64,000 nt of DNA from Styela clava (Eukaryota), in the NCBI RefSeq assembly GCF_964204865.1, contig NC_135253.1:1302001-1366000 (forward strand), read 5' to 3'. Made by a program: the position numbers and the translations under genes. This document shows positions 1 to 48,200 of the stretch, piece after piece (position 1 is the stretch's first letter; each line of letters begins with the position of its first letter). Below the pieces are notes generated by a model, which saw only the letters and a program-made list of their open reading frames with translations, ran no database searches and had not been told where the DNA came from.

Positions 1-44
1 CATTATCTCACTTTTTCTCTAGCAAGTTTCCCTCCTTTGTTTCT

Positions 45-290
45 TTTACTAATCCGAACTCTCCTACTCTACGTGTATTCTGGGAGGCTCTTGAAGCCGC
101 ACAACCGGTGAACAACATTGATATTGAAACCCGGGATCAGTCATGCGTGTTTTAATTTTAATCCCATACTCGGAACGAAATCCGGACCCGCAAAAATTGC
201 CTGATACGGTACAATATCATGGGATCGGACGCCGTCATAGATTTCACATTAATCACGAAAGAAATGATCGTGTTAATCTAGGGATTAGAA
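45..290. promoter_or_regulatory. Candidate promoter-proximal or enhancer cluster of Otx/Bicoid-type sites
   Basis: TAATCC at 50 and 159, TAATCT at 274, GGATTA at 282. Confidence 0.35.
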
Positions 291-3200
291 TCGCAACAAA
301 TCGAAAAATGACGATTCCGTTAATACACCATTTTCATTATTAAATCTTTAAATCTGCATAAAATGCAGTTGAGTGCATATTTTGGACATCCATTGCAATA
401 TAATCGGCCAGAACAACATGCCATTCTGCAGTTGGAGTCAGGGAATGTATAAGCTATATATTAGAGTACATTAGTATTTGGTTAACAGAACGTTTTCAGT
501 ATGAAATAGACACCTGAATATAGAATTACAATTTTGAAAAAAGCACATACGTATATATATATATATCTTTTTAAACTGTGCGTTACTTTTTTAAACTATA
601 AAGAGCATTTAGCGGTTGGTCGTATAAATTTGCCTTGTTGAACCCTATTACAGATGGGCTACTACATTTAAACTCATAAAAAGTTAGACAACTACTGCTT
701 ATATTAGTCCCCCCATACCCCCCCCCCTCCCCCACACACACACACAAATAAAAAAATAATACCAATAAATGATATTTTGGAAGTGCCTGGGCCTATCTCA
801 ACCTGCCAATCTACTTTAGCCTTTCCGTGTTTTACAAATGCTTCACCCTTGTCACCTCAGAAAGTTGAACATGTCAAATGGTCATCCTAATTTTCAAAGT
901 ATGAATGAGTATAATACTCAGGAAAATATCCTAAAAATTATTACAGGAATAAATACCAAATTATTTATAATATAACGCCATTTCTTGGCTTAACACCAGT
1001 ACTTAACATTAATTCACTTTGTCACCTGCAACATTTCATTTTGCGTTATAGCCACTGTTATGTGAATGTGTAAAATATTAAGGTTTTTGAGTAAATCAAA
1101 ATATCATTCTACAATATTATAGGTCGAGTTTTTACCCTTCATTTTTTGTTGATGACCTCTTTCGATTTGATTCGCTTCACAACAACATAGTTTTCTTCTC
1201 AGAATAGATGAAATAGATAACAAATATGAGATATTTTACTATTTTTGTAGCAGCGAGATCAGTATAAGAAGTTGGGTTCACGGGTGAGTCGACAGGGCTG
1301 TGAGATGTCGCATCTACAGTTAACTGAAATTGATTTTACTTCGAGTAGATAAAGTAAAAATTGATAAAAACTTGCAGTTGACCTTGTTTGTGTCGGATAT
1401 AATCAGCTTTTTGGGGATCTGCGAGATAGGATGCAACGCAACATGCCTTGTTGTATTAGTTAGTTTTCACTGAACATAATGTAAATAATATAAAAATTTT
1501 CTAATGTAGTTCAGATCACTAACAAAATTTATTCTGTAGGACATTCATCAGACTGCCGTGAACTAGAAAAAAACCATGAGCGCTATCGCGAACTTCTGTC
1601 GGGTGATATTACAAAATGTTGAATGAACAAGTACTTTATAAATATATTTCCAAAATATTATGTAGTTTTAATATCGTGACTCCTTAAGAAACAGAGACGA
1701 CAAAGAACAAATACATTTTCACTGAAAACTGTTTAGATGTTGAAAAACACAACCTTCAAATATTTGCTGCTTCAAAATACATTGCTTCATTCATTTCAAA
1801 TATTCTAGCAACTGTGATTCTAAAAAATATAAAAATAGAAGGGAATCAAAAAAACATAATGAAAAATAAAATATTTGTCGCAAGACTAAAGAACACATTT
1901 CGTTGCTATTAACCAATTACTTTTTTTAAATATTATATAACTCGATATATAATTTCAGTAGAAAGGCGTGCCATTATTACTGATAAAAATAATTGCTTTG
2001 TCTACCGCATGCGAACAAATAAACATATATAATCGAAATCAAAGAACAAGCTAGCACACTAAAATCATTCAAATATTTTTAAATATAAAAAGCTGAAAAT
2101 TGTACTTTTACCGTCCAAATTATGGTTTCTATGAAACTTTCACATGATACAAAAAAATTCATCATTATCATAATATAAGTTTCAAATTGCCTATAATTAA
2201 CTTCTACCAAAGGTCTACCAAAAAGAACAATGATGAATCATTACTTGATATCGCAAACGGGCTTGTTGGAACTTAACGTTTTAAAATCTCATTTAACTTG
2301 CTGAATTTTTTGTGTTATTTAGACTTAAAGCGAAATAGGGAAAACATATCGAATTTTTCTTGGTTTAAAGTCGATAAACAAACAAATATATGCGATACTT
2401 GGCGTCAAGCTTCCGATCCATTTTTGTCCATTTTGTATTGTTGAATTTTTTTGAAACTTCATCAAGCTAAACAGTTTTGTGCCCAATTCCACGCTGTTTT
2501 TGGTTTTATCAAATGACTAACCAGCACAATGTTTTGAATGCAGTGATAATTGAATAAACGGAAAAATATAACAACACGCAACTTCAAAATTGTTTCAACT
2601 TCAACAATAATCGAGTCTTGTACGGCGGATTCGATTAGAATTGTCAACTATTACTTGACATCACATTGAAACGCAAAAGTTTGAACCGTAGCAATTTTTT
2701 TTAATTGATTCTAAAAAACAGAAGGAAATTTCACGACTGAGACACTTTGGAAATCGCAACATCTACGTTTGAAAAATCCATACGCTGCTATTTTTATCAG
2801 TCTATCTGCAATTATCCGATCACGTATTATTTTAAATTTATTTTTCCTATTTCTCAATTTTTATGTTTGTAAAGCCAACATATAAATTAAACAATTGAAC
2901 CTAATTGCTATTATTTTCAGGCGACCATAATAATTATGTCACCACAAAAATATAGGCCTTACATTTCAACAATTATCGAGCCGTACTCATTGTAATACAA
3001 TCATCTTAAACAAGAAAATCTTTTAATTAATGTGACTAATTCAATGCACGAGCAAGTAAACTATGGCTGGAATTGGAGAAATTGACTTTTGCCTTAAAAT
3101 GAAGGCAATTTATTTATGTGACTTTCTTTATGAAAGACAACTCCTTCAAACATGGTGGTGGACACAAGTAGCTAGTTGACATATCTATACTTGATAGCCG

Positions 3201-4972
3201 TCTTTTTTCCATCAACAGATAATAAAAGATGAAAAAAACGAATTTTAAACGGATAAAATCTCTTAATTACGAGTGACCACAAAAACTCTGATGGAGCCCA
3301 CGAACGCGTTTCTTCTTTGGTGGCCGAATTAAGTAATGCATGTTTTACCGGAGGTTCAAGTAGTAATTTTCTTGATCAAAAGGAATAATGTGACAAACAT
3401 ACAAAGAGACACCGAATTAACACAATAAAAAATGAGTGAAATTCGTAATCAACAAGATTCTGTATGCAATTTTTCTCAGGATTAATATAAAGTATTTATC
3501 ATGTAATACGTAAAATTACCTAACATGCCACAGAAGTGTATCTTTGTATCTAGTCTCTGAATTCTTAATATGTATAATTCTGTTTTTAATATAGTTGTTA
3601 GGGTAAACCAATAAAGAGTAGGATTGATTGGGTGTGTATTCAAGATTTTGGCTAAAGAGGTAGTAATCTCACATATCAGTAGCAAACTGCTTTTTTATTT
3701 AACAAAAATGCTTATTATTAGTTATAAGATATTCTTCACCAATCTTGTATTTTATGTGGAATTGCACACTCGCGTTTATTTTACTTGTTCCGAGTTTGAC
3801 CAGAGGGAGATGAGAAATGTAGTGAACAGCTGGACAATTTTGTAGAATAATTGCCGCCAATGAAAATTTTCTCCATTCACTCGGCGATTCGAATATGAAA
3901 TATGCATGCTAAATATGGTCTTACGCAGTGCCGTATGAGGGATTAAAATTTCCCGTTTTTCAATTTGTTTGCGATGTACTACATGTGTTCATGAATATGG
4001 GAACCGACGGGGAATTATGTACGTTTGCGCACTGCTGGGCACAGCAGGGACGCATGTGAACCCCATATTTCTCTGCGGAACGATGGTGCAGAACCAACTG
4101 ACCGTATGGAATCGCACTGGCCTTGAAATATTAATTGCATTGTTAAGGGAACGACGCATTTATTGATACATAAGCGGATAAAAATGTGCGCAATATGTGA
4201 TGTCGTAGCATGGGATATGAATTTTAAATCGCACCAGGGAAGGGAAAAGAGTTCGTGGTTCGATGGTATTAATCGTTCATAGCTATTTATTAATATGTTC
4301 GGTAATCCTAAACGATTAGTTATTGAAACCTTAATCTTGACCATTAAAAATAATATAAAAGGTCACTAATCTGCGATATATTGATAGTGTGACCGTTGTA
4401 TCCCATGGTTATTTAAATGATTCCATATACGAATTTGACGTTCTTTATTTGCTCTATGCTGAGATGATGTTAAGAATTTTCCTGAGAATCTCAAATTATA
4501 TTGTCGCATGCCGTTACGAATATTTGCGTTACATTAAAATAAAATCAGTATTATCAAATAATTTTTCAAATACTCAAATCTATTTTTCAAAAATATATTA
4601 CACATTTTTATTGTTGATGGCGACAATGCGACAGGTTTTAATCAAGTTTCAATCGATATTATCATAATTATGTATTTCGCAATTACAAATGAATATGTTG
4701 GTCAATAATTTGTTCATAGATTCAAGAAACAACGAATATTGTTTTCATTAAACAGTAAGAATGCAATTCTAATATGGAACAATGCTTTTTTAAAAACCGT
4801 ATGACGTGCAAATTATTTTTGTACTATAAGAAACAGAAACGATGTATTCTTGCTTTTGTCCAGGGTATCACAACTTACCCGAAAAATACTTTAAAAATGA
4901 GTACTGAAATTCCAATAAAATTCCAAAAAAATTTAAATGAAATATGCATCAAGAACCGAAATAAAAATTTTA

Positions 4973-5012
4973 ATGAATCAAACCAATTATTGATGAATCA
5001 AACCAATTATTG
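4973..5012. repeat. Tandem duplication, 2 x 20 bp
   Basis: atgaatcaaaccaattattg repeated twice. Confidence 0.85.
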
Positions 5013-5507
5013 GTGCGATATATGCGTTGCCTATAGGTATTATACAAAGTTAAACTGTAGCAATTTCTATACTTCAGCCGAAATTATTGTTTGGCAATAT
5101 ATTAACTTTATTGATTCACTAAAATGCATTAGTTTTAATCTCTTACTATAGAAGCCTAAAACAGGATATATCGTTTGCATTTTGCAAAATCCGTCAAATC
5201 CGGATGAAATATATTAAGAAATAACTTAAACATCTTATGATGCGACTTCAAGCAGGATGTTATGATATTGGTTTGTATTCTGCATTATAATGCATCATGC
5301 TAATTGATATAATAAATATTGATATGCAAACCATCCTATCTATCTTTGTAACAAAAGTTTCAGAACCTGAAAGTGGCGAAATTGGCAGGTTTCCGGCAAT
5401 AATTGTCGAAAATAATTTCAGATAAAATTCTTTTCGCATAGATTATAGCAATGCATGAAATAAAAGATAAATCAAACGATGAAACGACTATATGAGATAC
5501 ATTTAAT

Positions 5508-5727
5508 GGTACTTTCGTAGTGTGTGTACCAGGTTAGGGTTAGGCCATAATTTTATTCCGATTTTCCTCATTTAGGTTCTATTACGAGTTCGGGGACTGA
5601 CTGTGTTAGCCCAGTCCAAGTTAAAATACCCCTTGCCTATAGGTTTCAGTCCCTTTACACAATTTGATGTAAAATAGGCGAACAAACTTAGTTAACTCCA
5701 TATTGGTACACACACTTCTGGAGCGCC
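5508..5727 (+). mobile_element. MITE, GG..CC family, long form (about 220 bp)
   Basis: Imperfect TIRs around AGTGTGTGTACCA, internal GGTTAGGGTTAGG, TSD catttaat/catttgat; homologous to the copies at 10554 and 58324. Confidence 0.85.
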
Positions 5728-8700
5728 CATTTGATAATGTATGTCTACACGAAGAACATGTAACTGATTTTTAACACGGTGTGATAAACGATTTCATGTC
5801 AGGATTAAAAATGAAACAAAGTTTCGTTAAAAAAATGATCAAATGCAAGTTTGTGAAACTATGTTGAAACTGAGTTGACTAAGTTGAGAGCAAAAACACA
5901 TTTGCGGGTTAGGTGAATGTCTTACTCTTTTAATAAACTTTCTGTCAATAATCATAGGAGGTATGATGCCGTTATTCTTTGTCAACTTACTTTTGACGGC
6001 GAATCGAAGTTCTCTGTAAGCTACTACACGAGTTCGAAATATATATAACAAGTTTATATGCTTCAAAATAAATACTATCTTGGAAGTTTAACAAAATTAA
6101 TGTACATTTATTTCTGATAAATAATATAAAACTTTTAAGCGAGTGTTATTCCAAACGATCAAAACTCAACAATTGTTTTACAGTTAGTTGCCAATTTCAA
6201 TAATTAGGAGACGAAAACAAAAATGCACTTAACATGTCTTACTTCAAGTTATTATAAAACTGCCTGTTAATTCCTGGCAGGTGTATGATGGATTTACTAA
6301 TAAGTACGAGAAAGGCGTTCAGTGCCAAGATATAGACCTAATCTCTCGTACGTATGTTTGCTCACAGCTGGCGTACATTATATCAGATTTAAATCAATTA
6401 TCATTATACTGTTGAATGAAAAGGGTAGCTAGAATTCGAACGAAAGCTATTTTGGATTGAACTTTCTAGATCGGCTGCTTGCCCTATAATTATCAAGTCT
6501 TAAAAACTCGATTTTCTATATATAATGCTTAACAGGGTTTACTCCTATGAGGGACGAAATTTGACCATATATACGAAATGGCAAAAAGCAAAAACTTGAA
6601 TCCCGGGTTTTCCACTTCACGCCCACTCCAGCTCTACAGATAATTCGTGCGAAACAATATAACAGGGACTCTCCACGACTCTCATGGCGCGTGAGGACAG
6701 GCTCTAGTGCCCGTTTGATTTCGAAATCATTAATAAAAATAGTGACATTGAAAAGAGCCTGTGAGAAATGAATGCCAGCGAGTATTTGATTGACAGAGAA
6801 GCAAAACGGTTATGAGCACACAGCGTAACTCTTGTGTCACTTTTGTAAACCGACAAAAAAGGCTCCGCAAAGATGAGACCACTTATAACAGAGCAGGCTG
6901 TAGAAAGGCGCGAATGAGAAGCACTCGAAGTGCGAACTTGTTGGCTTTAATTTTCGGAACAAAACCGTTTTCACACTCGATTTTTGTTGATCTGAATCGT
7001 AATGATGCTTCATCCCTGTAACCACGATCACGTACCGTCTCGCTCTATCGAAAAAACAAGCTCTCTTCTCTTTCAATGGTGTTTTATCGTTTACTTCGCA
7101 AGTTTTTCTTTTTTTCAGTATTATGTTAATAATGACACTCGCTTCGTAACTTAACTGAAGTTATTGCACACCACCTGCCAACCTCAAAATGTGGCAATTT
7201 GGGTCGATACATTGAAAACTGACACTAACCACGTTTCATTGTGACGTCCTTCATTCGATCACACTTTTTTCACAATATGGGGCATTGACATTGGCGAGGA
7301 TAATAACGTGAACCCAGACGTGATATTTCTATTAAAAAAGAGAATTTTCCAAAGATTGTTTATCCACAGAAAGTGGGTATTAGAAATAATAAAAGATGTG
7401 ATGAAATTCAGGCCAAACTCGTAATATTACAGCTGTGCGCAATGAGCAAATATAAAAAACCAACTGTCAGAATATCTAATAGAATTTAGAATGGAGTGAG
7501 AGGATTTTTGCTAATGCTTAGTGATCAATTGCTTGAAGAATTACAGAACTCAACATATTTCCATAATTCTACCCATTTTCTCCGATTCGCGAGTTATAAC
7601 ACTGGGACAAAATTAACATGAGTTCAGATGAGACCGTGGTGCTTCATGGGTTACGCTGAGACAAATATAACGTGATTGCTACTCTACAACGTCAATTGTA
7701 CTCATTTCTTTGTGGTTGATTTCGCCAAATAACCAGCAAGTCTCGTATTTATATTTTACGGTTCATCTTCATTCAACCTTGTATTGAATACATGAGTAAA
7801 GAAAAGTTGGCATTGTGCCACCCTCACTTTGATGCAGGTAAATAACGCCAAGAACGATATACCATTGTTATTTTTGGTGATTTATAAAAAAAAAACAGTA
7901 GACAACACAAAAGTGTAAATTTTGTGATTGCCATATTTCTGTGGTTATAATGAATTTAATATACAATGTATACAGGTTCAGTCAATAAATTGGAGTGGTT
8001 TACAAAGGCCCGGATTTTGAGTTTATTACCTGCAACAACAGTACAGTTTTTATATTTTAGACTGAAAATTTTTAATTTTTCAATGCAAAACACTACATTT
8101 TTTATGGCAAATCCAACGTCATTCGGTGATATCTACAAAATAATTTGACGCACGAGGATACACGAATTACGCATTGTGCTACGTTCCTTACTAGGAAGCT
8201 TTTATTCCATGTAATATAAACATCACGACTTTTCTAATCCGATTGAAACAATTTGTACAATATGAACCTGTCTTTCGAACTGTCAAAATCTACAAGGAGC
8301 AAAAAAATCGGAAAACAGTTCATATATTTGTTTAGTTTTGAGGACCAAATTTGATCTAACATTTTTAAATTATATACGTGTACTTTATGTGGCCTTAGAT
8401 GGCCAGAGTCAACATTATTTCAGCAAAATATAATTCCAATAAATAAGCAAACATCATTAAAAGTAAATTAGCTGCAATAACAATTTTAGATATTTTGCAA
8501 AATTTGTCTCCTGTCAAGGAACGTCTGTGTTTCTCACAATAATTATTTCAACAACAAACAGAAGCAGTGTATACAATGAACGTTGGAGACACGCCTTTAA
8601 TAAGCTGTTATAGTTTCGAAACCTGAATGAATTGGGGATTGTGATTTATGAAGAAAAATGGCGGACAATTGAAAACGTGACTCATCGAAATTGGATCACT

Positions 8701-10553
8701 GTTTGGTCAGAACTTGAATAAGCTAAATTGCAAGGAAATAATTTTTTGTTGAAATAGCAAATATTAGCAAACTTGAATTAGTAATTCTATAAGTAAGACA
8801 TATCTAGGCTAAATAATTGCCCCGGCGTTGCGAATACCAAATAGATGTAATTAAGTAATGGCGTCGCGGACTTTATGTGTAAAAAACATATCAAATATAG
8901 GGTTTCCATAAACTCCCATCCAAGAACATCAAAACTACTGTTTTTTATTCCTAATATTGTAAATTACTTTTAATTTCTTCTATTTCTGTTCTCAGAATCA
9001 GTTCAAATATTATAAATAAAAATAGAATAACAATGTGTAACAATATGAACAAGAAATCATTCCAGTCAATCTGACAGTTGATAGAATTATTTATAGTAAA
9101 TTGTTTTCACCTGTATTGCCTGGAATTTAAACGCATTGGTGATGGTGAGGCTATTCAAGGGTTTACGTGTGCAAGTAGGAAAATACAATGCCGACCATAT
9201 GGCGCCATTGCATTTCACAACAAAGAATTTTCAAGTGTTTATCTTGTAATTATCGAGTACTGATTAGAACACGTTTTGTTCTTGTTGCCGCAGAATTTAA
9301 AACATTATACAGTGATGAATTTTTTATCTGGAAAATTAATTCCAAATTTTTATAATTTCCAGATCATGACTTATGCTTAGCCAAACAACAATTTATACTA
9401 GTTTGGTGGCTTGGGAGTATCTGCTATAATTACGAAAAAATTTGTAAAAGTAACTAAAGTTGTGACAGCGACGGAATCATTCAATTACTTGTACCACGAT
9501 CTATTACAAATATTGTCACGAAAATGCAATATTGGCACTGGTGTTGTTCAATAACTTATTGTTGCCACAAGGAATATATATAAGTAGACGTACAGATGAT
9601 AAATAGAAATCGCTTTTTGCTGTATTCGTTTAAAAAAAATATCAACATAACAGAAATAAATTAATTTTAATTCGAATTTATTTTTATCGGTTTCTTACTT
9701 TACACGTTCTTACCCACCACATACGCAGAATAGAAGATATTGTTCAAAAACGATACAAATCAAAGAGTCGCTTATTTATGTCTAACAGTATGTTTTATCA
9801 TCTTTGAGAAATAAATATTGGCCAATAAAACAAACATGATAATTATATTGATATGTCCTTCAACATTCGAAAACACTACAGAGTACATAGACCTACCGCA
9901 CGATCAAGTTCTGATCTCCGCAATTTGGCTGTTGGCATAACTGTAACACCGGTCATTTTCTTTAATCCCTCTTAGTGTAATAACTGGTTGTAAAAAATTA
10001 TGGCTTTGATGATTTTGACGTGATTATACTGTGATAGAATTATACAATGCTATATAAATTTTATGCACACATGGGAAATAGTGGATTTTGCGCGCAGCCC
10101 AATAATATTTTCTGTATGTAGCTAAAAATCACATTTTGTTTTCTTGAATAGCAGCACAATATAGTCAAACATTGGCTCCGAGCTAACGAATTGCAGCAAT
10201 ATCTGGACAAATGAATTCATGTACAAGAAACGCGAATGTAACATTGCAATACGTGTATCAAACATCGTCAATTAACCAGAAGTATACTATTCTTAGAAAC
10301 AATAAAATTATAAAATTTAATATATGAATGAACAATTCCATCAAATAAACATTTCCAGTGAAAATACGTAGGGAGAGAAAACTTCTGTGAATACCATTCA
10401 TTGAATTGGAATGCAACTGCGGTTTATCTATACGGAATAGGATTTAATTATATAAACAACAAACAATTGACCGATTGTGACGAGGCGAGTACGCGCTGTG
10501 TATAGGAATAAGGACATGTTAAATGCTTGAATAAACATTTTTGTATAAAGGAT

Positions 10554-10764
10554 GGTATATTCAATATTGTATAATATGGAGGTAACTAATCTTGTTCGCC
10601 TACTTTACATCAAGTTGTGTAAAGGGACTGGAACCTATGGACAGGGGGTATATTCACTTGGCTAACACAACAGGCAGTCCGAACTCGCAATAGAACTATA
10701 ATAAGGAAAATTGGAATGAAATTAGGGTCCAACCCTAACCCGGTACACACATTACGGGAGTACC
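10554..10764 (-). mobile_element. MITE, same family, long form, one TIR degraded
   Basis: Reverse-complement similarity to 5508-5727; TSD taaaggat/taaatgat. Confidence 0.8.
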
Positions 10765-19669: not shown

Positions 19670-19725
19670 ACGAAATGGTTGAATCAGGGGTTACAGATCC
19701 TGGGTTCGAGTCCCACCCATGGCGA
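19670..19725 (+). mobile_element. tRNA-derived SINE-like fragment
   Basis: Pol III B-box with T-arm GGGTTCGAGTCCC (19702-19714); no complete cloverleaf. Confidence 0.45.
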
Positions 19726-20166
19726 AGGACATATGAAATCAAGTACACATCGTTCCGAAAATATGTTGACTCAGTCAGAACTGGCCTAAATGATCGGAAA
19801 CGCGCACAAAACAGTTGACATAATATCATAATAAAAATACGAAACGATCAAGTTGACTGACTGCTTCTATTAGCGCATGCTTCAAACATAGAACGTCATT
19901 TTGGGCAGTACTGACACATATAATACAACGAAACATAATTTGCATAAAAAGTTAAATATGATCGTTCAATACTAAACGCGTTTACTTTCGTCTTTAAATG
20001 AAATTTACGAAAATTTGAAGAAATTCGAAACAACTGACACTATATCACGAAATCAATGATCAAGTTATAATATACAATTTGTCAATAAAACTGCCGTTTC
20101 TCGAGCAATATCAGAAAATACTGAAATTATATAATGTATACATTCTGATTGAATAAATCATCTCAG

Positions 20167-20362
20167 TAATCAGTCATGTGTTGATATTTATTAAAATGCA
20201 ACAACGGACGTAATTTGGATTTAGCAGACAATTATTCTGAAATCCTAAGAAAATTCAAATTACTTAATCAGTCATGTGTTGATATTTATTAAAATGCAAC
20301 AACGGACGTAATTTGGATTTAGCAGACAATTATTCTGAAATCATAAGAAAATTCAAATTACT
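20167..20362. repeat. Tandem duplication, 2 x 98 bp
   Basis: Units start at 20167 and 20265 and differ at one position. Confidence 0.92.
20285..20290 (-). terminator. Candidate EHBP1 polyadenylation signal AATAAA (second copy at 20187-20192)
   Basis: First canonical AATAAA I found on the minus strand downstream of the stop codon. Confidence 0.4.
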
Positions 20363-36200: not shown

Positions 36201-39200
36201 TTTTCATACGTGTAGGGCAAACCGCTATATTCCGACTTATACAACCTCTATTGAAGAAATAAAACTTGTTTCATTATTTCCAACTATCTCAAACCAATCA
36301 AATGTCTTCGCATCACGGCCGATTTGCTTTCTATGAGGATTAGTGTCGTTCACGCAATCATCTAGACCAAACCCCCGGAATAATTTTAAATTTTCAATAG
36401 AATCGAAATCACAAAAGCTGTGTGTGGTCTTGTCACAGTGCGATCAAATATTCTTCGTCGTTTATTACAACATGGAACTAACACAGTGACGTGACAATAA
36501 TAACAGTTTGAGGCGTTGAACTATTACAACAAAACTGAACAAACTTTATTCAATTCAAATTCGATCACAATAAACAAATTGTACTATCCCTTCAGTACGA
36601 AATTTACGGTTTAATAATAATGGTCCAAGTTGGACCAATATTCAAGATGAATGATGTAGCACGGAATATTGTAATTTTCTTGAATGAATTACCGGAATAG
36701 CATGATGATAATATGGACCGGCCACCTCATAACGATAAGAAATTCTCAAAACCATACGAAAGTGAAAAATTTTGCAGGAAAGAACAAATCTTATAAGTTG
36801 TATATCAGAATTATTACATTTGAAAATGGCAATTTTTAGAAACTGAAGCGAATAAAATTCTCGAAGCGTGCTCCTTCTCTATTCGGGTGTCGAATCGCGA
36901 ATCCAACCTAAATAAATCTATGTTGACAAAAATCGAAAGAAAAATCAATGGAGCTCCGAGCTCTATATTTCCAGAAGCTCGTTAGGAGAGTAGAAATGCA
37001 TTCTGGGGACTTTACGAAGCTGTCAAACCCGTCAAACAGCGTTGAGAGACGAGACAGACCACCAAGCGAGAATCGACCCCGAATTGGGGATTAGAGAACT
37101 CGCAGATAGAAAAAGACAAAAGCGAGACCGCGTCCAGTAGAGTCTAGTGGGAGTTAATACCACACGGAATTTGCATGACAGCGTGCTCCCTCGCACAAAG
37201 TCTATTGTTCTTAAAACATCCATGAAAAAGTTAAGCAAACTGACTATTAACGATATTGAAAATGCCAAACGAAGACGGCGACGCACAATGCAAAAAAATG
37301 AAAACCTAATTACCCTGACCACAATTTATTGATTGTAGATCGTAATACCATATATGATAAAAATATTTGTACGGCATTGAATACATACTCCAGCAATAAT
37401 ATAGGCAATGAACATAACAACATTGTTTTCCGGGATCGAACTATATTTAATTTCGATATATTTATTGACAAAGTGAATCAATACCAACTTTCTTTTGTAT
37501 TTGGACCACCAAAGAAGCGATAGACATGTTACTAACAAGCGAGGGTCACCGTGGGTTGATAGCAATGACTCGATGGCGATGATTACGCGACCAGATGTCA
37601 AAAAGTTTGGCGACGTTTACGTTATGACGCAAGCACGCAATGACGCGACTAAGGTTGAGTTTAGGTTGATAGTTGGTGATCAAAGGTTCGTAAAGCTATG
37701 AGCGTGAGTGGTTCTTGATCGTAACGAAACGAAATGATGATGTATATATGATTTATAAAATTGCGTTCAAATCCAACGCCAAAGTCGGAATTTTTTCTAA
37801 AAAATCTAACGTACCATATCCCGCTCCATGAAACACAATTAATCTGAGCTTCCGCCACGTAACTCCATACCTATTTTTTCGAGTGTTTATCGACCTCGCT
37901 CGGAACTAGAGACAGACGAGCAGTTACTACGTTTTGGGAAGGACCGAAGTATTTCCGGTTTATAGGAGTTTACTAATGTGATGCAGCAAGATGAGGTGTT
38001 ATAGGAGCTTTAATTCTGGATTTTCGACTAAGATAAGCCGAGGCGCAAACCACTGAACGAACCACCGTGTGGTTGGAAATTTTCAAAATTTGTTGTTGCC
38101 ATAGAATTAAGAACTAAGCAGTGTTTATTTTTGCGATTTTCTGCACCCGTTCAGGTGATGAAATGGAAGATTTAGAATCGGATCATGTTAGGTGAAGTCC
38201 GGGACATGGGTGGAACAGGCATCGTTAACGAATATTCTTAGACCAATGCAATTAAATCTTAAATTTTTATACTTTCAGAAAACTTAAGACTTAGCGCCGA
38301 CAGCAAAAGGTCGTCGGCTGATAAAAGAAAAGGAATGATTAGTAAAAACAAACAAAATTCGTCACGCACGGTTGGTGGCCACTTATACTTAGAGTAACTT
38401 AAAATGAGAAAAATAATCTGGAAATCGGCTCAATATGATATTATGAGAAAACTTGGTGAGGTGAGGGACCCCAACGCCATTTTGTATTTACGTCCGGGTA
38501 ATAGTAGTTGAAAATCGCAGTTGTTGTGATTAAATTCAATCGATTTTCTATCTGTTATGTCAAGTCCAAAAAAATCTGCTTCAAATTCGTCAATGTTATT
38601 CTTGAATTCTCACTTTCTCTAATTTTAATCACCACAGCTGGAAAGATTTGTTCTATTCAATACAACATAACAAATTCCGCTTACAGAATCAGTTATAAAA
38701 AGTTCACAAGTGAAATGTGGTATAGTATATACAGTAAAACGCATCTTCTCCTGTCATAGTCACTTCCACAGAAGGTAAAGTGCTTATAATTGCAGTTAAT
38801 GTGAATGCAAACTATCAGATATTTGATACGTGTAAGGGAGTCTGAATAATCCGAAAAGTGGTTCACTGGTTGCCATCTGGATGCAACGTCTATTGACGGT
38901 GGAGATGACCCATTATCGACTACATTTCTACAAACGATTGGCATTGTTATGGAATCAACCCATATTCTACTTCTGGGCTCATAGTTTTGATTAAGTATAC
39001 GCCCAAGAGTCTGAGAAATCCGTATGAAATATTAAAACTCACTAATGGAATTACGTCCAGAGATTTTTGATATATTTTTACTGACAGAAAGTTTATTGAA
39101 ACACAATTAACTGTGTATTAATTAATTCATGGGTAGTTTATTTTGTAATATTACTTTGTGGTGCTATGATAAACTTGTAAAATACGAGCAGCGCAGAGAG

Positions 39201-42200
39201 TTATCAAAAGTTGAAACGAGAGGGTCGTATCAGGTTACCAAAATTCAGAGTGCAGAAAATTGATATAATTGGCCTCCTAAAATTGGTTAAATAACACCGG
39301 TGAAATGGCGTCTGGCATGCTAAAACCGTGCCACGCCTTCAATAATAAAACCCAACATCTAGAAGATATAAAAATGGTCAAAATTGAGTAATATGGACAA
39401 ACGATATTAAAAAAAAACACAAAACTTACCCGATCTTGATAGTTAATAGTGAAAATGATAGCGGCTTAGGAGAAAATGGAAACGCTGATAAATGGGGCAT
39501 GTAAAATTGCAAAAGAAATTTAAAACTTTGCGGATAGTCAGAACGGAAACGTTCTGTTATGTCACTAATATGATTGGGCCGCCGAATTTATTGTTTCTGT
39601 CATAGTAAAGCAACGATCGAAAAAGACATGTCGCAGGAAATATGACTTATGTATGACTTAAGTTTGGCAATTCAGTTATTCGCCATTTACAGCGAGAAAC
39701 GAAACTGGCTCAAGGCTTGGTTACCGAGCTATCGATTCAACTGTCCCCAATATGTTTCACCTCATAACTTAAAAAAAGATAGTTATATATATACAGATTT
39801 TATATGTTCGAAAAAAAATATTTTAAAACATTACCACCTAAGTGGAGAAATGCAAATATCAAATTTATATGAAAGTGTACGAGTAGTAGAAATATCTAAG
39901 ACGGACGATTTATAAAATGTAGCAGAAAAACAAAGCGATAGATCCGTCACCAGATATACAACGTCGGGTGGCCTTTCATATACAATTAGCGCAAATTAAA
40001 AGGACAGGTTTTTGCTGTCATTCACGAGATAGTAAAACTGACAGCCCGCCCGCGATTTACTGATTCTATCTTTCCTGTACAATATAAAAAAATAAGAGAA
40101 ATTGGACTAGACCGAGGCGTCGGTGACTCGGTGACCTCTATTGATAAAGGGTCTCGTGAAAATTGACACGGGTGTTCTTCACAAACCTATTCAAGTTTAT
40201 CTGCTATGACGTTGGTAAGAATGCCATGGCATCAAGATGGATTCAAAGATAGCATTTTATTAACGGAAGAACTGGTGAACGAAACATAGGACCGATTTCT
40301 TTATATACAGTTCACAGAATGCATCAGATTCTTCTCATCGTGCGTTAAATATGAAATATGGAGCGTTAAAAAAAACATTCTCACACGGTCATATTAATAA
40401 AACATTTTATCTGTAACAATTTTGCTACCACATCACTCAATATCGACGTAAATTAGACAATGTTCAGGCGTCTTGCAATAAACTTTCTTATTAAATATCA
40501 CCCACTGAATAATAATAGCATTTATTATCGAAGAAAGTGCGCCCGCATACCCTGGAATCGCGTGCTAGCGGTTCAGGCATCGCAGGTATCAAAGCGTATC
40601 TCGATGGCTATCGTATTTTAAGGTGACATGCGGATGGGAAGAATCTTGATAGCAATTGAAATTCTAGCGTTCAATACAATTCGCTAAAACGTTGAAGAAC
40701 GATCTCTCCATTAACCCTTTATTGAGTCACATATTGAAAAAGGTACGCAATTCTACGACCAGATCCAGTTTCATAAACGCCGATATATGCATCAATACTT
40801 GCAGCGATGACACCCATTTTCCAGCTCACTACCGAAACTAAGTTCAAAAATTTTCAATCATTGTGCATTTTTGATATGGTACCTCAGCGGTGAGAACTTG
40901 TCTACAGTTTCAAGGCGATAAAACGTGGTTAGAAGGTTCTTTTAGATAGAATAAACAATACCTGTACAATTTATGAAAGTGTTATTTGGCGGTTAAATGG
41001 TCCCAAAAAAAAAAAACAGTTGCGAATTTGGTGCGTTTTTGTTGAGAATATCGGGTTAATATAGGGTAAGAAAAAGTGTTTATTTTTTTCGAAGAGATAC
41101 GAGTACAATACGGAACGATTTAATCGTGTAAAGGGTGATAAGAACTAAACGGGTATGCTCACGCGATGCCGATAATTGGGCAAGATTGAATGTGGTGGGC
41201 GGAAAAGAAGTCCGCCATTTTGTCTAAGATACAACCACATATTGCGGAAATTTAATACTGCCCCAAAGTCAGTACGAGCTCGTGAAATAAATAACCCCAT
41301 CATATAGATTAATAAAGAGTACTAAATGAAAATTTTTATTCATTTGGGATGAAAACGCTACAACTGCAGTTCATTTGACCGGAGCTGACAAAACTGATAA
41401 AACGGAAAAGAACGATTGCCAATAACCACAGGTCCATAGGGTTTTTTCATGTGGAAAAAAACATAAAATTATAAATTAAAAGTAGATAAATAATAAGATC
41501 GAAAAAATATTTAATTTTCATATAAAATTTAAGAAAGATATATAATTTTGTAAATGAATGTTAGCTATGTAAGATTTTTCAGTGCGTTTATTTAAATCGC
41601 TGATTAAAATCTTGTGATAAATACGTAACGTTTTGTTTTTCTGTCATTAATCCGATTATAGACACATAGATACTAATCGTCCTAGAAGATTAATTCTGGT
41701 TGGTCGGAATAAAACCGACAAAACGAGATTAAAATATAGCCAAAGATGGCACCAACGTAAATCAACTTAAAAAGAGCGATTTATGTCTGGCCAACGCATG
41801 TTTACAGTCGACGAAAAGAATCATTGATTACCACAAAGCACAAGAATACAGTACAGATCATCGAAGTATTTCGCCCCGGATGCCGAAGTTATTTTGAAAA
41901 TTCAAAATGGCGGCTGTAGGTGAAAACAAGAGGCCAGGACACGCAGAAAATAAATACACTGGTTTGCTGCGTAGGTGTAAATAAGCAAAGTAGGTAAATT
42001 AAGAAATCTATTCGCATTGGACAGTAAAATATATACTTGATCACTGACTTATGTCTAACATCTGATTCTTATGAAACAGGATTTACAAAGTATGACCAAA
42101 ATAAAGAGTGAACAGCAACTAAATTATTATTATTACAACATGTAGATTATATCAACCCAGCCGAAAAAAGAAAAGAAAAACAAAAGGTTTCTTTGAGTGA

Positions 42201-45200
42201 AGTTCGTTTCCAACCCCTATGCACCGTTGTGGGTATCATTAGGGAGAATGCATGGAAGCTAGATTTCACGGTGCGATGTCAGTTTTTCTAAGCGGGACGA
42301 ATGATTCATTAAATGACGATATACCTGTTGTCGCATCCCAAATGCTTTCTGGCTCCCGACCACCGCTTTGGTATTTCCATGTCGCTTCGCATTGTGTTTT
42401 CGACAATTACACGACGATAAAATAGATCCAAGTAACCGCATTCACAAAAGTATCCAAAATGTCGCAAATATACTTATCCACTAAGCAGAATAATGGAAAA
42501 GAGTTTCCACAAGCTTTGCGACAAAAGTGAAGGCAAAGAATCCTAATTCGCGAATGAATCCCGCGTTACCAGCATTCGATATTTAAATCCACTTTTCCTA
42601 ATCTTGTCATCTTTATATTTCCGTTCGAACGACTTTGTCGTTGATCCTAAAAGCTTAAGTTGCAAATTCGGAAAGACGCGTATGACACATCGACGTAGCT
42701 GATTTCCCATAGCGGACACTGACATCATGAAAATGAACAGACAACCAAGCAGTGATCTTCCTCTGCCAGCAAAGCATTTGCGAAAGACATAGCTCCAAAA
42801 TCGGATCAAGGAATCGCGATGACCGCAGAAAACGTTTGGGGATAAAGATTAAAACTTTTATTTATATCCTTTCCCTTTTTGGTCGTGAAAAGAAATAAGA
42901 TTTTGTCTGTGTATTTATTTTTTTATGCGAAAAGATTTAGATTTCATGCGATCTGTGATCTGTTCCTTGGGCTCCTATTTCGTTCTTAATTTTTAATCTC
43001 GTGATTAACCGGTATTAGAAGATTCGCTATACCGGTATCAGTGGTCCCCAATTTCCGTTAGCCCCCGTAAAATCCCCAGACAAAATCGAATTTAGCGATC
43101 CTAACCGATTTAGGAATGCAAACCCGGCATTGACAAACAACGGGTGCCCGACCAAAACGACCCAATTTACCCCAATCCCATCAGAATCCCTAAAAATGTT
43201 GTAGGGGATCACCAAACGCGCGGATTAGAAAAGATCGAGGGTTGCAGAGCAATAGTACGGCGATTTGTACATTTGTTCGTCGTGACATCCGTAAGGTGAT
43301 AAGAAGATGAAAGCCGGCGATAGTCTGGTTCAGACCGGATTATCCCTCGGATCACAACCTTGTCCATAGAGATAGGGATCGTCCGTGGCGGTAGGTAGGT
43401 AGTAAACTTACAGTCCCAACATAGTAGGTGACTTCCAGAGTAAGACTTAATGTAATAACAAGTACCACCAAGCCATGAAATGCCTCTATGAAGCCCCACC
43501 AATATAAATTGTCGTAAGATGCCATTGAAATAATCCCATTTGTCAAGAGTATACGACGAAATTTTTGATATTTAATATAAAATCACAAATCCCACCACAA
43601 TCATAGGATTAAGTCGATGACTCAAAATTAAATTGAACTTAAATATTAATGAAAATGAAGAGAAAAAACAGGGCGAGAGATTTTACATTGTGAAAGTTTA
43701 TAATTCGACAGAAATTGGGCTAAAAATATTCAAGTTGAGCAGACAATAAAATACATACACGTTTACTATATAACGAAGAAATATTTGTTATGTCATTTCT
43801 TTCAAGGATTAGCTCAAGCACAAAATAAACAACAAATAATAGTTGTGCAGGTGTGATGCCGCCACAACAAAAGCAGATCATATTGGAATGAATAATCACA
43901 AACAAGGATGGAGAAAAAACTTTTTAAACGGAATCCTATTAATAATAATATGTCATCAACATATTGTTTTAAATGCATTTGAATATGGGAATCTATGTTG
44001 GCAGGTCAAACTCATATGGAAGTCAACTCTTTCTGAAACACGACAAAGAATGCAAACCCTATATGTGATGGAAAGTGAGACTGCGAGAGACAGATGGCTG
44101 GCAGAGAGGCGCATGAAAATTGAATAAACTTCTTGCCGCGTATGGACGGCATGGATCCGACAGTTCGATATAGATTTTATAATCCCATTATACGGGTTCC
44201 AAATAACGGAATATCGTAGAAATGGGATATTCCTGTTTGTAAGGCAGTCTCAAAAAAACTGAGGCCGTAACTTTTTTCTAAGTAAAAACGGTTCGCGATG
44301 CCATGCTACTTTCAAAGCGCTGGCCTGTCCAAAGCTAAATTATGTGTTTTATTTGGAGATTTGGTATACGAGACAAGTATTCCAACTTTGCATAATTTAA
44401 TATTAAGTAGTACGAAAATCTGAACGTATAACTGTAAACAAGGACAATGGCACAGTACATATATGGTAAAAGCACAGAGCGCAGCAGTGCGTATAATGAT
44501 TGTCTGTCTTTGGCGTTATTCTATCTGGAATGATGTAAAAAGTCTTTATTTAAATCCAAATATAAAAAACATACCGAGGTAAAGAGATGTACATATACGC
44601 AAGGAAGAAATAAATTCTATAGGATTCGACATTGTCAACACATGTCCTGGATAAGGTAAAGGCTATTCTTATCTGGAAAGCTGTAAAAAGGGCTTTGCTC
44701 AAATCCAAATAAAGAAACAATAACGAGTCAAATGGATGTATTGTAGATGGACGCAAGCAAAGATCAAATTCTGTAGGATTTGACATTGTCAACCTTTTTC
44801 CTGGTCAAGGTAGTAGTCACGTCTGACCAAAATTGGAGCAAATCACATTCAAAAGACTGATAAAGGCAACATCTTATACAGATGATACCAAAATATTTCA
44901 TTTTGCTGTGAATCGATACGTATATATTTTACTGTCAAATGTGAATAGATTCCTTAATTTACCTACTTTGCTAATTTACACTTACGTTGCAAACCAGTGT
45001 ATTTATCGATTTGCTGTGAATCGCACATGGTTTCACGTTCAGAGTTGGTTCACCAATGTACTGATTATATTATTAATAAATAATGTTTATATTTGTTTGC
45101 TAATTTGCTACAGTAGTGTTGACGCGAATTGGAATCAATTGGATCATTACTTTATAACCAAAATAGTGCTAAAAAATGCATATTATCGCACGTATATACG

Positions 45201-48200
45201 TGGATTCGTTGTTCGGTTGGAGAACGTCTTAACATGGCGTGGCAGAACAATTGAAGGTCATAGAAAACGGCACTTCCGGAACTTTTCATTTCCGATAGTC
45301 CACTGTAATAGGATCCGGATAGGGAACGGTGCCAATTAGTGTCAGATATAGGTCGCGCTCATCGACCCCGTTATATATTCATGGAGGTGAATGAAAAAGC
45401 GTGTGGATAGCAATTCCGCGTGCATAAGGTCGAGCGATTCATAACTTTGGTTCAAGTTTTGCTACAAAATGGGGATTGCATGGTTCGTAATATACAGAAA
45501 TCCTATTATGTTTTATTTCGTCTCTTATGAAGGCGGTTTTTCGAACAAAGTAGGAGAAAAATAAAAACAAGACGCCAATAAAATATATTTTTGATCTTTA
45601 AGATCCGAATGCGCCACAGCATTGTGTGATAAACCATTGAATAATACCATAATAATCTTCCTACGACAAAAAGCGATTATAGATGAGTGATGCTCGCATT
45701 TTAAAGAGGTGCATTATTACATTTGGTTTCATTGGTTTTGTCTTCAATTAAGAATTATCCATATTTTGTCTCATTTTTTTCAATGAGAAAAATCGTCATA
45801 AATGTCTGTGTCATAAAACGAAATACGGGTGCTCCCGAAGTATTCGTACCAAGATGGCGCACAACCTGAACATAGCATGTGTTAATGTGTACCAGGTTAG
45901 GGTTGTTCAGGCTGTGTGTCATCTTGGTACGAGAACTTCCGCAGCGCCGAAATACGCAGGTGATGATGACTCCTATATTGGATAATAGTATTGTTGTATT
46001 TCCAGTCGTTTCGGTCCCGGATGATCGTTCATTTTCGGACCTACGCTATGATGTTGTTATCCATAGATTACCTCACTTTATTTCCCCTTTACTTACTTTG
46101 ATGTTTATTTAACCTGAACCGGCATACTCTTGTAAATAAAATTGCTGCATCACAGCGTTGGTGGTAATATACTTGCGTGTACTTGGGGTAACTCGTTTTT
46201 ACCACTCTCATTGTTTTTTTTTAGTTTCGGGCCGATGGCACTTATAAACATGATAAAACACGAGTAAAACAAAGACAACTAAAAGTAACAAAAACAATCC
46301 AAAGAAAGAAAAAGCCGAGACATTAAGAGCATGGTCGTAAGCGGGGGATATGTCACGTAAAAAGGAGTTGTAGTAACCGTATGCTTCTAATTTACTCTCA
46401 TCGAGTCGTTGCATCTTGATTACTATCCAGATTCCAGATCAATACTCGCATCAGTGAATATAGCATGTATCGCTGCAACTGCGCATCGTCTGAGCGGCCA
46501 TAACTTAACTGACATAATATGAGAAAGTGTTCAAATATCATAAGAGTATTTAAGGTCATCTAAAATATGAAAGAGAGAAATAGTAGTGGCTGTAAAACTC
46601 ACGGGACGCAGTCTTCAGTTCCTGTAATTCTTCCTGAACTTCAGCCATTCTCTCTCCCACTACTCTCATTTCTTCTTCTAAAGTCATTCTCTCTCGATCA
46701 ATCTTAAAAATAGAATCAGAAAAAATCAAACTGCCGTGTACAAACGTAGAGACTTGTGATTGGAAACTACGGTGATCAAATTCTATAAAACTAACAGAGC
46801 ACGCTATGAATGAAGTTGTCGATAATTGTCATAACATATCGTTAAAATGAAATAAACAATAAATTTGACATCAACAACTAAACATAAAACAATAATACAA
46901 TGATTTTACAGCCTTGTTCAACATACTTCACTTGTATTGTTAGTAGCCGCAACACTTTTTCTAATAGAAGAAGCTGATGATTTTCTTCTCATTAATTTGA
47001 TTGATGAAGGCCTCGAACGATGAGGTGATGATTCGCTATCAAGCTGACCTGAAACATTCAGAAATATCGTAAGGCCTTGACACTATCAAGTGCAATAAAA
47101 AAAAAATTATAATGCGACATGTTAACATGGTGTATTTCTGTATTTTGAACAAGATAAATTATTAAAATATGGAACACAGAATCAATTCCTAACATGGTTA
47201 ACAAGGCATTAAAATTTATCGAAATTCTCATTTATATTGCTTATATTGCCAAAGCGACCAAAAATAGCAATACCCTGTTTGATTGACACGAACCTTTTGT
47301 TGAAGCTATAATAGGACTAAAGCTCTCCAACTGTGTCATTTTAACAGGTTTAGCGACGTTGATCCGAATTGGAGATGCTGATTGCACAGACGAAGTTCCG
47401 TTTAACTTAGGATCGTGCCTGGGATTTCGATATTTTACGGCAGGCTGTTCAGGCATTGGAGTAGATGTTGTCGGCCCTTGCCTGTTGACAATGTCTTTTA
47501 TGTCGTTACGAGGAGGTGTAGAAACAGATGGCGTCCTGTCCTCAACTTTAGTTTCTATGGTTAAATTGAAAAACAATATGATTAGAACAAGAAGTCCAAT
47601 ATCAATGAAATACATTCAATAAATATACTGATCCCAGGTCGAACGAAAAAATTTAGAAATATAAGGCACATCTCACAATCATGAATCAGTAACATATTCT
47701 TTGCAAAAATGCAAAAGACCTATTCCAGCTCAACAACTGAATGTTGTAACTTCTCTTCAACCAGTACAATGGCAGAATAGAAAAAATGACAAAAATCATA
47801 CCGTGGTACTGCACGAGTTTTATCAAAAAATTTGCTTCGAGAAAACTCGGAGAATAAACCTCTTCAAATAATAGTTTTATACTTTTAATTGTCAAAATAC
47901 CTACTTTTCCCTGTCAAATCGTCATTTTTGTATCACGATCATGTTTTAGTTTCTAAAATTTGACATTTTCCACAAAATTCACTTTTATGAACTATTTGCA
48001 ATCAGTTACTATGCAGAAATGTGAGATAACAAACTGTTGAAATAATCCATAGATAGTAATTCAAAATAGAATGCAAGGATAAACACTAGTATAATACCTG
48101 GTGTTGACGGAGTAGTAATAATCTCAGATTTTTCGTCCAAAACAGGAAAACTGTTTACAACAACAGATCTTACACCAGGAGACTCTTTATTACCAGGATT

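Follow-up and report, generated by a model that had tools for sequence, protein, structure and literature searches.

Near the 3′ end of the EHBP1 gene of the ascidian Styela clava one intron reaches 22 kb, and the DNA beyond the stop codon holds no recognisable gene, which raises the question of whether this non-coding DNA serves EHBP1, serves a neighbouring Otx gene, or serves neither. In vertebrates, OTX1 follows directly on the 3′ end of EHBP1 and is oriented the same way; ascidians have compact, promoter-proximal enhancers and eroded synteny. The locus was analysed in a window of 64,000 nucleotides (the whole stretch of DNA studied; G000:C4:1302001-1366000, window position 1 being C4:1302001) and, where features continue past its ends, in the adjoining DNA.

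EHBP1 and the neighbouring Otx gene

EHBP1 is encoded on the minus strand as a protein of 1478 aa, which tblastn with XP_039249326.1 (P0086; the EHBP1 queries are named XP_039249326.1/.2, Styela clava) recovered in 23 HSPs, 22 of them inside the window. Coding exons 2 to last occupy 21113..63358, as supported by tblastn, Pfam and protein names, and tblastn places exon 1 on the same strand at window-equivalent 65738-65845 (L012:1738-1845), 1.7 kb past the right end. The protein carries the features of the EHBP1 family in order, namely NT-C2 (residues 13-164, 65 bits), CH (367-442, 67 bits) and bMERB (1324-1455, 95 bits), all over the Pfam cut-offs, and ends in C-S-V-M, a CaaX-type terminus followed by the stop codon at 21113-21115; such a box is a usual feature of EHBP1. 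The 3′ UTR takes up at least ~529 nt of the 3′ flank, judging from the record positions of an RNA contig from study X10. A further short intron is probably hidden in the tblastn HSP 51570-51869.

The original prediction placed a minus-strand Otx gene just beyond coordinate 1, and such a gene was found. Pfam detected a homeodomain on the minus strand at C4:1282998-1283135, and the exons of this locus translate to an Otx-type protein that begins with the Otx N-terminus, has a K50 homeodomain and ends in WKFQVL, which we take to be the Otx tail. The homeodomain (residues 65-121, 76 bits) is of the paired type with lysine at position 50; the exon downstream of the junction after homeodomain position 46 begins V-W-F-K-N-R-R, bringing K to position 50. 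The protein is 100% identical to the NCBI entry "homeobox protein OTX2-like [Styela clava]", and the top named relatives after it, among 83 matches, are Otx of Herdmania curvata (67%), then Otx of Phallusia, Ciona savignyi, Ciona intestinalis and Clavelina, and then vertebrate OTX1/2. Pfam at E <= 0.001 reported the Homeodomain only and no TF_Otx C-terminal domain (PF03529); since other tunicate Otx relatives (P0002, P0006-P0009) likewise list PF00046 alone, this absence is a tunicate trait and does not count against orthology. The gene is single-copy, with one locus in 377 Mb, the next match being 45% identical and confined to the homeodomain.

Measured from the Otx ATG, which lies 18,269 bp to the left of coordinate 1, the EHBP1 stop is 39.4 kb away, and the two genes stand tail-to-head in the same orientation. 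Conservation of the Ehbp1-Otx adjacency and orientation is thus confirmed in S. clava. The linkage of Otx and Ehbp1 extends "from placozoans to humans" according to the available text of Irimia et al. (2012, PMC3514665), who list four predictions for genomic regulatory blocks (GRBs); the same text agrees with the expectation, voiced at the outset, of an ancient pair with Otx enhancers in Ehbp1 introns. The S. clava locus presents several of the features concerned: the trans-dev gene Otx adjoins the unrelated, non-developmental EHBP1 with no recognisable gene in the 39.4 kb between them, and a pair linked across distant lineages is linked here as well. The block is a further instance of an already published ancient GRB, Otx-Ehbp1.

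Inflated introns, repeats and the gene-free flank

The giant EHBP1 intron (24545..46602, minus strand; 22,058 bp, GT..AG, phase 1) falls between residues 1350 and 1351 and so splits the bMERB domain, and a second inflated intron (21421..24240, minus strand; 2,820 bp, GT..AG) lies closer to the 3′ end. The remaining 21 introns are estimated at 99-2,379 bp. Within the interval covered by RNA evidence (23401-29400), RNA-type contigs from two studies, X5 and X10, join 24313/24438; at 24241 their loose end continues as the first bases of the 21420 exon, at 24544 as the last bases of the 46603 exon, and both long introns are therefore spliced as given. Splice junctions and RNA contigs together show that the two intervals originally proposed were exact to the base, and the accompanying statement that the other EHBP1 introns stay under about 2 kb agrees with the ~2,017 bp measured for the largest of them inside the window. 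One low-depth X5 contig is seen at 23951-24161, and run X14, labelled as another organism, differs by ~1-4%, as would the same species.

The size of the intron admits a neutral explanation, in which the gene order is a leftover, the intron and the dispersed genes are ordinary for S. clava, Otx is controlled by proximal enhancers lying no more than a few kb away and the non-coding DNA of the window has no role for Otx. According to the genome paper (Wei et al.), S. clava genes reportedly tend to have one large intron each, introns and intergenic regions >10 kb are more numerous than in Ciona, and gene size is doubled, so that a single inflated EHBP1 intron is not special by itself. Bystander genes likewise have more introns >10 kb (Irimia et al. 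2012, PMC3514665, available text), and at 22,058 bp against 99-2,820 bp the giant intron fits that description in a genome where large single introns are reportedly common. The composition of the intron fits the neutral account less well. Wei et al. ascribe the size increase to transposon insertion, yet demonstrable multi-copy DNA amounts to ~434 bp (2%) of the giant intron, or ~885 bp (4%) with local duplicates, against a published genome-wide repeat content of 46.69%; the intron figures are a lower bound, in which ~40 candidates were scored per query and decayed transposons below ~74% identity are invisible. The segment 32350-39500 returned a single first-look candidate genome-wide, namely itself, and 24546-32000 showed just a 70-bp repeated element among the 40 of 102 candidates that were scored. 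At the level tested, then, with ~2-4% demonstrable repeats, the intron is not mainly decayed transposon, the outcome that had been named in advance as speaking against a regulatory role.

A young non-autonomous DNA transposon, 2,540 bp long and bounded by terminal inverted repeats of 18 nt (15473..18012; CpG o/e 0.74), has >20 near-full-length copies elsewhere in the genome at 88-99% identity. Short interspersed repeats occur at 5496..5744 (~225 bp, copies 84-90% identical) and 10573..10782 (~195 bp, 80-90%). In the giant intron lie a 220-bp repeat of high identity (32089..32308; 97-100%, often arrayed elsewhere) and a palindromic MITE-like repeat of ~130 bp with matches on both strands (45817..45958; copies 84-89% identical), and in the second inflated intron a multi-copy element of 88 bp (22287-22374). 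Pfam detected no hAT transposase remnants inside the block, although it did find them immediately beyond its limits, a positive control for the method.

The 3′ flank of EHBP1 (1..21112) forms the distal half of the EHBP1-Otx intergenic region and was covered by ORF, Pfam and repeat searches. Positions 1-46,500 contain 28 stop-to-stop ORFs of >=85 aa, the longest in these 46.5 kb being 170 aa; among the 20 that were scanned, Pfam gave no match at a curated cut-off, and no Rfam family reaches the gathering score anywhere in the window. Both the flank and the giant intron are therefore without a recognisable CDS, which upholds the earlier description of about 21 kb of non-coding DNA 3′ of the gene.

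A CpG boundary within the EHBP1 transcription unit

The giant intron has a CpG o/e, a historical proxy for methylation, of 1.19 (846 CpGs where 712.6 are expected) and the second inflated intron one of 1.11, whereas the value for the 5′ introns is 0.48 (164 CpGs where 339.8 are expected); the GpC control is flat. Change points fall at ~48.0 kb and at ~65 kb, the latter beyond the window, with likelihood ratios of 97 and 46. The part of EHBP1 at 48001..64000 (minus strand) is CpG-depleted in the manner of a methylated gene body (introns 0.48, exons 0.60), while positions 1..48000 belong to a CpG-replete domain of ~87 kb in all (window-equivalent -39 kb to +47.5 kb), which contains Otx and has the young transposon, at 15.5-18.25 kb, as its sole interruption. 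The switch from depleted to replete at ~48 kb is sharp and lies inside the transcription unit, dividing it into ~18 kb depleted and ~27 kb replete. In Ciona sperm, genes are methylated in a nearly all-or-none manner, and such a 40/60 split in EHBP1 would therefore be unusual. CpG retention may, however, be common to giant introns at large, with low exon density as one conceivable cause, and have no specific tie to Otx.

Strand asymmetry adds a second signal. AT skew is +0.098 in the giant intron and +0.097 in the 5′ introns, against +0.014 to +0.027 in intergenic DNA, and skew of the EHBP1 type runs through the entire giant intron and ~3 kb beyond the stop. With a skew equal to that of the 5′ introns and not to that of intergenic DNA, the giant intron behaves as a long-transcribed intron; the data suggest that it has long been transcribed, yet without a methylation-type signature. 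These observations bear on the view that the intron serves EHBP1 itself, by harbouring internal promoters, splicing regulators or alternative 3′ ends from which isoforms with and without bMERB and the CaaX box would result, the CpG boundary at ~48 kb marking the end of most germline transcripts. The CpG-depleted domain does stop just short of the last exons, as this view would have it. Against it, the skew continues across the intron and past the stop, suggesting long-term transcription, RNA contigs carry the full 3′ exon chain at depths of 115 (X5) and 14 (X10), and no RNA contig maps to 24601-29400, so that we consider it improbable.

The giant intron also holds a GC-rich island at 25901..26400, where GC is 0.48 while the window averages 0.34; its sequence is unique genome-wide and makes it a candidate element. 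Similar islands are found at 43001-43500, 36901-37300, 13201-13600, 23501-23900, 6601-6900 and 3801-4300, and GC in the islands reaches 0.45-0.49. The islands and the low-depth X5 contig could also be referred to an unannotated gene in the giant intron or flank, either nested or specifying a non-coding RNA; as an explanation of the size this is very improbable, given ORFs of at most 170 aa with 0 of the 20 scanned over the Pfam cut-off, no Rfam family at gathering score, and no RNA contig across 24601-29400, the 25901-26400 island included.

Regulatory reading and comparison with known blocks

The reading that we favour, at a probability of roughly 0.55, is that the window represents most of the S. 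clava Ehbp1-Otx block, with at least part of the intergenic DNA and of the giant intron carrying putative Otx enhancers. EHBP1, a broadly used Rab-binding trafficking gene, would be the bystander, ending on the minus strand 39.4 kb upstream of the Otx promoter; at least some of the 39 kb between the genes, and some of the 22 kb of intron within bMERB, would carry enhancers looping to that promoter, with precedent in zebrafish otx1b-ehbp1 (experiments) and in amphioxus (contact data). Selection against breaking or littering such a landscape would keep the genes together and the DNA transposon-poor. The motif tests were weak, which counts against this reading: TAATCC sites number 51 against 39.2 +/- 6.2 in shuffles, a count reached in 8/200, and GATA+ETS clusters number 2 against 1.1 expected, reached in 58/200 shuffles and not significant.

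Both GATA+ETS clusters fall outside the window, at ~3 kb upstream of Otx, where the neutral account would look for control of the gene. That account also draws on Ciona and Phallusia, whose described Otx elements sit upstream of the gene and within its introns (Madgwick et al. 2019, 10.1101/371005, as far as its available text goes). The literature yielded neither a published report of a tunicate Otx enhancer located in Ehbp1 nor, by title or abstract, an S. clava ATAC or ChIP study. The neutral account has to accommodate a linkage that outlasted heavy rearrangement in a lineage where Ciona, with 197, retains fewer conserved pairs than any other species compared, and a pair with demonstrated function in zebrafish (both from the available text of Irimia et al. 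2012, PMC3514665). We regard it as less probable than the favoured reading. Building on the favoured reading, it is tempting to go further and propose that Otx is partly driven by putative enhancers 40-65 kb upstream, in the EHBP1 bMERB intron, and that the limit of the domain is a methylation-type boundary, the ~87 kb forming a CpG-replete, transposon-poor valley centred on Otx and invading the last 27 kb of EHBP1; this extension is tentative, and we would not expect it to hold in full.

Otx-Ehbp1 is among the best-documented ancient regulatory linkages, to which a stolidobranch ascidian now adds a tunicate data point. An intact pair in otherwise heavily rearranged tunicate genomes bears on the idea that cis-regulatory constraint preserves gene order, the more so with the details kept here, a tail-to-head order and one inflated intron, poor in repeats, on the side of Otx. 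The stretch that merits reporter assays is narrowed to the 22 kb intron and the 39 kb intergenic region as candidate DNA, with seven GC-rich islands. If the CpG boundary is tied to regulatory domains and not to intron length, domains could be delimited from sequence where conserved non-coding elements are unalignable; if this proves true and general, gene-body CpG retention could map tunicate regulatory landscapes where alignment fails.

Among known systems, the zebrafish otx1b-ehbp1 block (Irimia et al. 2012, PMC3514665, available text) shares with S. clava the same orthologous neighbours, a very long bystander intron and a compact Otx beside it. There, an enhancer in an ehbp1 intron drives an Otx anterior CNS pattern in transgenics, with H3K4me1 peaks and contacts by 3C; the zebrafish gene has "several long introns" over hundreds of kb, in contrast to one long 3′-end intron on a scale of ~65 kb in S. 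clava. Amphioxus, likewise an invertebrate chordate with a single Otx and a neighbouring Ehbp1, supplies contact data of its own: Otx contacts the Ehbp1 locus, and gene deserts at Otx1/2 are described as following the erosion of bystanders (Touceda-Suarez et al. 2020, PMC7530604, available text). Within ascidians, Ciona and Phallusia Otx have several enhancers with partly overlapping activity, conserved in order and not alignable in sequence between the genera, none of which is described in Ehbp1 in the available text (Madgwick et al. 2019, 10.1101/371005, citing Bertrand et al. 2003); a conserved-element test for Styela therefore needs a congener. The CpG pattern recalls the mosaic methylation of Ciona (Suzuki et al. 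2013, PMC3827831, available text) in its sharp borders between depleted and replete DNA, in a depleted domain that begins near the start of EHBP1, and in the replete state of intergenic DNA and the developmental gene. In Ciona sperm, however, a gene is reported to be either methylated or free of methylation over almost its whole length, whereas in S. clava the CpG o/e proxy splits a single transcription unit.

Otx beyond the 3' end of EHBP1

The original prediction placed a minus-strand Otx gene just beyond window position 1, to the left of the trafficking gene EHBP1, and a gene answering this description was located there both by scanning the 376.8-Mb assembly (380 contigs) for the Pfam homeodomain (105 matches) and by mapping the S. 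clava OTX2-like protein P0001. The relevant Pfam match, at C4:1282998-1283135 on the minus strand (C4 being contig NC_135253.1), covers homeodomain positions 1-46, and the open reading frames (ORFs) there comprise a homeodomain exon of Otx type and, upstream of it, an exon beginning M-S-Y-L-K. The last exon begins V-W-F-K-N-R-R, which puts a lysine at homeodomain position 50, ends W-K-F-Q-V-L and is 100% identical to the NCBI entry 'homeobox protein OTX2-like [Styela clava]'. Within the genome, P0001 is placed only at C4:1280758-1283732, in four pieces, the next-best match reaching 45% identity over the homeodomain only. From window position 1 the Otx ATG lies 18,269 bp to the left, and its distance to the stop codon of EHBP1 is 39,381 bp; the two genes share one orientation, so that the 3' end of EHBP1 faces the Otx promoter. 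Ehbp1-Otx synteny is confirmed in S. clava, a stolidobranch ascidian. The exons of both genes were treated singly, with public proteins standing in for spliced models: P0001 for Otx and P0086 for EHBP1. About 19 kb past the 3' end of Otx, a CpG-depleted patch holds a 479-aa open frame (L018:8419-9855, minus strand; C4:1260419-1261855), which by eye looks like a putative membrane-anchored aspartyl protease: the motif D-[TS]-G-[ST] occurs twice and the C-terminus has a hydrophobic stretch.

EHBP1-like exons lie in minus-strand ORF pieces of the window. A search with the CH-domain exon among 1.84 billion representatives returned P0086, the EHBP1 protein of S. clava (XP_039249326.1/.2; 1478 aa, 97% identical over the exon), together with one relative, P0090, at 48% full-length identity; a word search with the 404-aa exon scored none of 4111 candidates, this exon being poorly conserved and its full-length kin falling outside the length band. 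The protein carries NT-C2 (residues 13-164), CH (367-442) and bMERB (1324-1455) domains, all over the Pfam cut-off. By tblastn, P0086 gives 23 ordered minus-strand HSPs, 22 of them inside the window, exon 1 (L012:1738-1845, minus strand) lying 1.7 kb past the window's right end. The two long introns expected near the 3' end are present at exactly the predicted coordinates, with GT..AG junctions and RNA-contig ends in agreement: a giant intron of 22,058 bp (24545-46602; phase 1) that splits bMERB between residues 1350 and 1351, and one of 2,820 bp (21421-24240). The same GT..AG reading of the minus strand gives introns of 124 bp (24315-24438) and 99 bp (21207-21305) and a TGA stop at 21113-21115, after C-S-V-M. 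The remaining introns are estimated at 161-2,379 bp, and the HSP at 51570-51869 probably hides one more short intron.

RNA contigs from two studies (run X5 at depth 115, run X10 at depth 14) skip the 124-bp intron at ~24314-24437. Loose contig ends at 24241 and 24544 match the exons on the far side of the 2.8-kb and 22-kb introns, and 24601-29400 is free of contigs from either run. One X10 contig continues for 738 letters below 24241, which implies an EHBP1 3' UTR of at least ~529 nt if the UTR is unspliced. An intron-like AT skew (+0.097) at 18013-20583 reaches ~3 kb past the stop codon and points to regular read-through or a long 3' UTR. A third run, X14, which dates from 2025, has a word share of 0.11 and is labelled as another organism, covers 28 of the 30 bins of 23401-29400 with short contigs of low depth. 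Since 17 of its 25 contigs are at least 95% like S. clava (7 fall below 90%), they represent same-species-like DNA and provide no cross-species footprint; judged by this likeness, X14 holds S. clava-like DNA as a contaminant, from prey, or because the sample is itself a very close relative.

A compositional boundary within EHBP1

The ratio of observed to expected CpG (CpG o/e), taken as a proxy for methylation, splits EHBP1 within a single transcription unit, the 5' 18 kb being CpG-depleted and the 3' 27 kb, to which the giant intron belongs, replete. The 5' introns (49194-65737) have a CpG o/e of 0.48 (164 observed, 339.8 expected) with a TpG+CpA o/e of 1.26, and the 5' exons a CpG o/e of 0.60; the giant intron has 1.19 (846 observed, 712.6 expected) with a TpG+CpA o/e of 1.10. 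CpG o/e is 1.11 in the 2.8-kb intron, 1.10 in the flank 3' of the gene (1-21112) and 0.93 upstream of the EHBP1 start, and the GpC control stays within 0.8-1.2 in all regions. Single-change-point fits place one change at ~48.0 kb (CpG o/e 1.17 versus 0.53, likelihood ratio 97) and another at ~65 kb (0.44 versus 0.93, likelihood ratio 46). By CpG o/e, the giant intron is without the signature of a methylated gene body. The longest CpG-replete stretch of the contiguous 234 kb runs from about -39 to +47.5 kb in window coordinates, includes Otx and is interrupted only by a young transposon.

The AT skew of the giant intron (+0.098) is uniform along its length and matches the 5' introns (+0.097), against +0.014 to +0.027 in intergenic DNA, which marks it as a compositionally old, transcribed intron of EHBP1. 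In Ciona sperm, sharp borders between methylated and unmethylated domains and genes that fall almost entirely into one or the other are described (PMC3827831). Judged from composition, the boundary inside EHBP1 would fit a protected domain shared with Otx; alternatively, CpG retention may be a trait of giant introns generally, for example via low exon density, rather than of Otx.

Coding and repeat content of the flank and the giant intron

The claim that the flank and the giant intron lack recognisable coding sequence is borne out by Pfam and Rfam. The interval 1-46,500 contains 28 stop-to-stop ORFs of at least 85 aa (the longest of 170 aa), and none of the 20 submitted to Pfam exceeded a curated cut-off, the best sub-threshold scores (HdeA, 21.8 versus 22 bits; MBDa, 17.1 versus 27) being at chance level. 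Pfam likewise gave nothing for six ORFs of the EHBP1-Otx intergenic region, taken from its Otx-proximal half, and at gathering score Rfam found no family in the window, with no hammerhead family at 32070-32180. The Pfam scan was checked on ORFs just upstream of EHBP1, which as a positive control yielded hAT transposase remnants (Dimer_Tnp_hAT, 41.7 bits; DUF4371, 60.2 bits) at L012:9670-9999 and L022:2539-3915, that is, at window-equivalent ~73.7-80 kb, a short distance (a few kb) ahead of the EHBP1 start and outside the block.

Local blastn matches within a 290-kb set, made up of the window and 22 neighbouring 10-kb loci, cover 2.1-3.6% of each segment, with 0-13% in 4-kb bins of the window and 0-25% in the neighbouring loci, except three at 67-74%; by local blastn only, coverage of C4:1292001-1302000 is 0.0. 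In whole-genome searches the best ~40 candidates were scored per query, so that multi-copy figures are lower bounds. Repeats make up ~15% of the flank, nearly all of it one non-autonomous DNA transposon at ~15473-18012 (2,540 bp), which is bounded by 18-nt terminal inverted repeats and has direct repeats in subterminal position. Its more than 20 near-full-length copies, 88-99% identical and spread over many chromosomes, indicate recent activity; the element is also the sole CpG-poor patch of the intergenic region. Own-genome searches revealed short repeat elements at 5496-5744, 10573-10782, 22287-22374, 29742-29813, 32089-32308 and 45817-45958. The 220-bp element at 32089-32308 has copies 97-100% identical, often in regularly spaced arrays elsewhere (e.g., C2:27.10-27.13 Mb and C1:6.694-6.697 Mb), and the 88 bp at 22287-22374 are a truncated relative of it.

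Within the giant intron, the best 40 of 102 candidates for 24546-32000 disclose one 70-bp repeated element only, and the sole first-look candidate for 32350-39500 in the whole genome is that interval itself. Demonstrated multi-copy DNA amounts to ~2% of the intron, or ~4% with an 87-bp inverted pair (41950-42036 and 44920-45006, 92%) and a 154-bp tandem repeat (44517-44793). The inverted pair bounds ~3 kb that include the tandem repeat and are possibly a low-copy transposon, which would raise the repeat share to ~16%; copies of this segment elsewhere may be masked by a MITE family among the best-scored candidates. The segment also holds the GC-richest island (43001-43500, GC 0.49).

A neutral explanation exists, in which the giant intron reflects a genome-wide habit of large introns: according to Wei 2020, genes of S. 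clava tend to have one large intron, and introns and intergenic regions above 10 kb are more numerous than in Ciona, which is ascribed to transposon insertion; one inflated intron alone is accordingly no evidence for a genomic regulatory block. However, the giant intron is nearly repeat-free, in a genome with a published repeat content of 46.69%, and this misfits the transposon-insertion account. A mainly transposon origin, which as decayed sequence would have counted against the original prediction, was rejected, given that 20 ORFs hold no transposase or reverse-transcriptase remnant and multi-copy DNA is almost absent by nucleotide similarity, a measure that ancient decayed elements may escape. 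Recent acquisition of the DNA was rejected on its AT skew, equal to that of old introns.

The regulatory reading and known Ehbp1-Otx blocks

That the non-coding DNA between the two genes and within EHBP1 is a putative regulatory landscape of Otx is plausible, at about even odds on the sequence features considered: repeat poverty and the compositional boundary raise the odds, and the commonness of large introns genome-wide lowers them. Across the 64.9 kb that separate the Otx ATG from the end of the giant intron, TAATCC (an Otx-type site) and GATA+ETS clusters are enriched weakly or not at all in an exploratory count. The only two dense GATA+ETS clusters in this span (L002/L016, window-equivalent -15350 to -14861) lie ~3 kb from the Otx ATG, in a number not significant against shuffles.

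A literature search on ATAC-seq found no paper on S. clava chromatin by title or abstract, and non-coding sequence is reported as not alignable between ascidian genera (Madgwick et al. 2019, 10.1101/371005). A full-text literature search found no published description of a tunicate Ehbp1-Otx block; the type of block is already known, and the S. clava instance appears to be undescribed in the literature searched. Membership in such a block was judged by the four predictions of Irimia et al. 2012 (PMC3514665), who name loss of the Otx-Ehbp1 linkage only in fly, worm and Nematostella. According to the same study, an enhancer in a zebrafish ehbp1 intron drives expression in the Otx anterior CNS domain, and contacts with the otx1b promoter are seen by 3C; in amphioxus, according to Touceda-Suarez et al. 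2020 (PMC7530604), Otx contacts the Ehbp1 locus.
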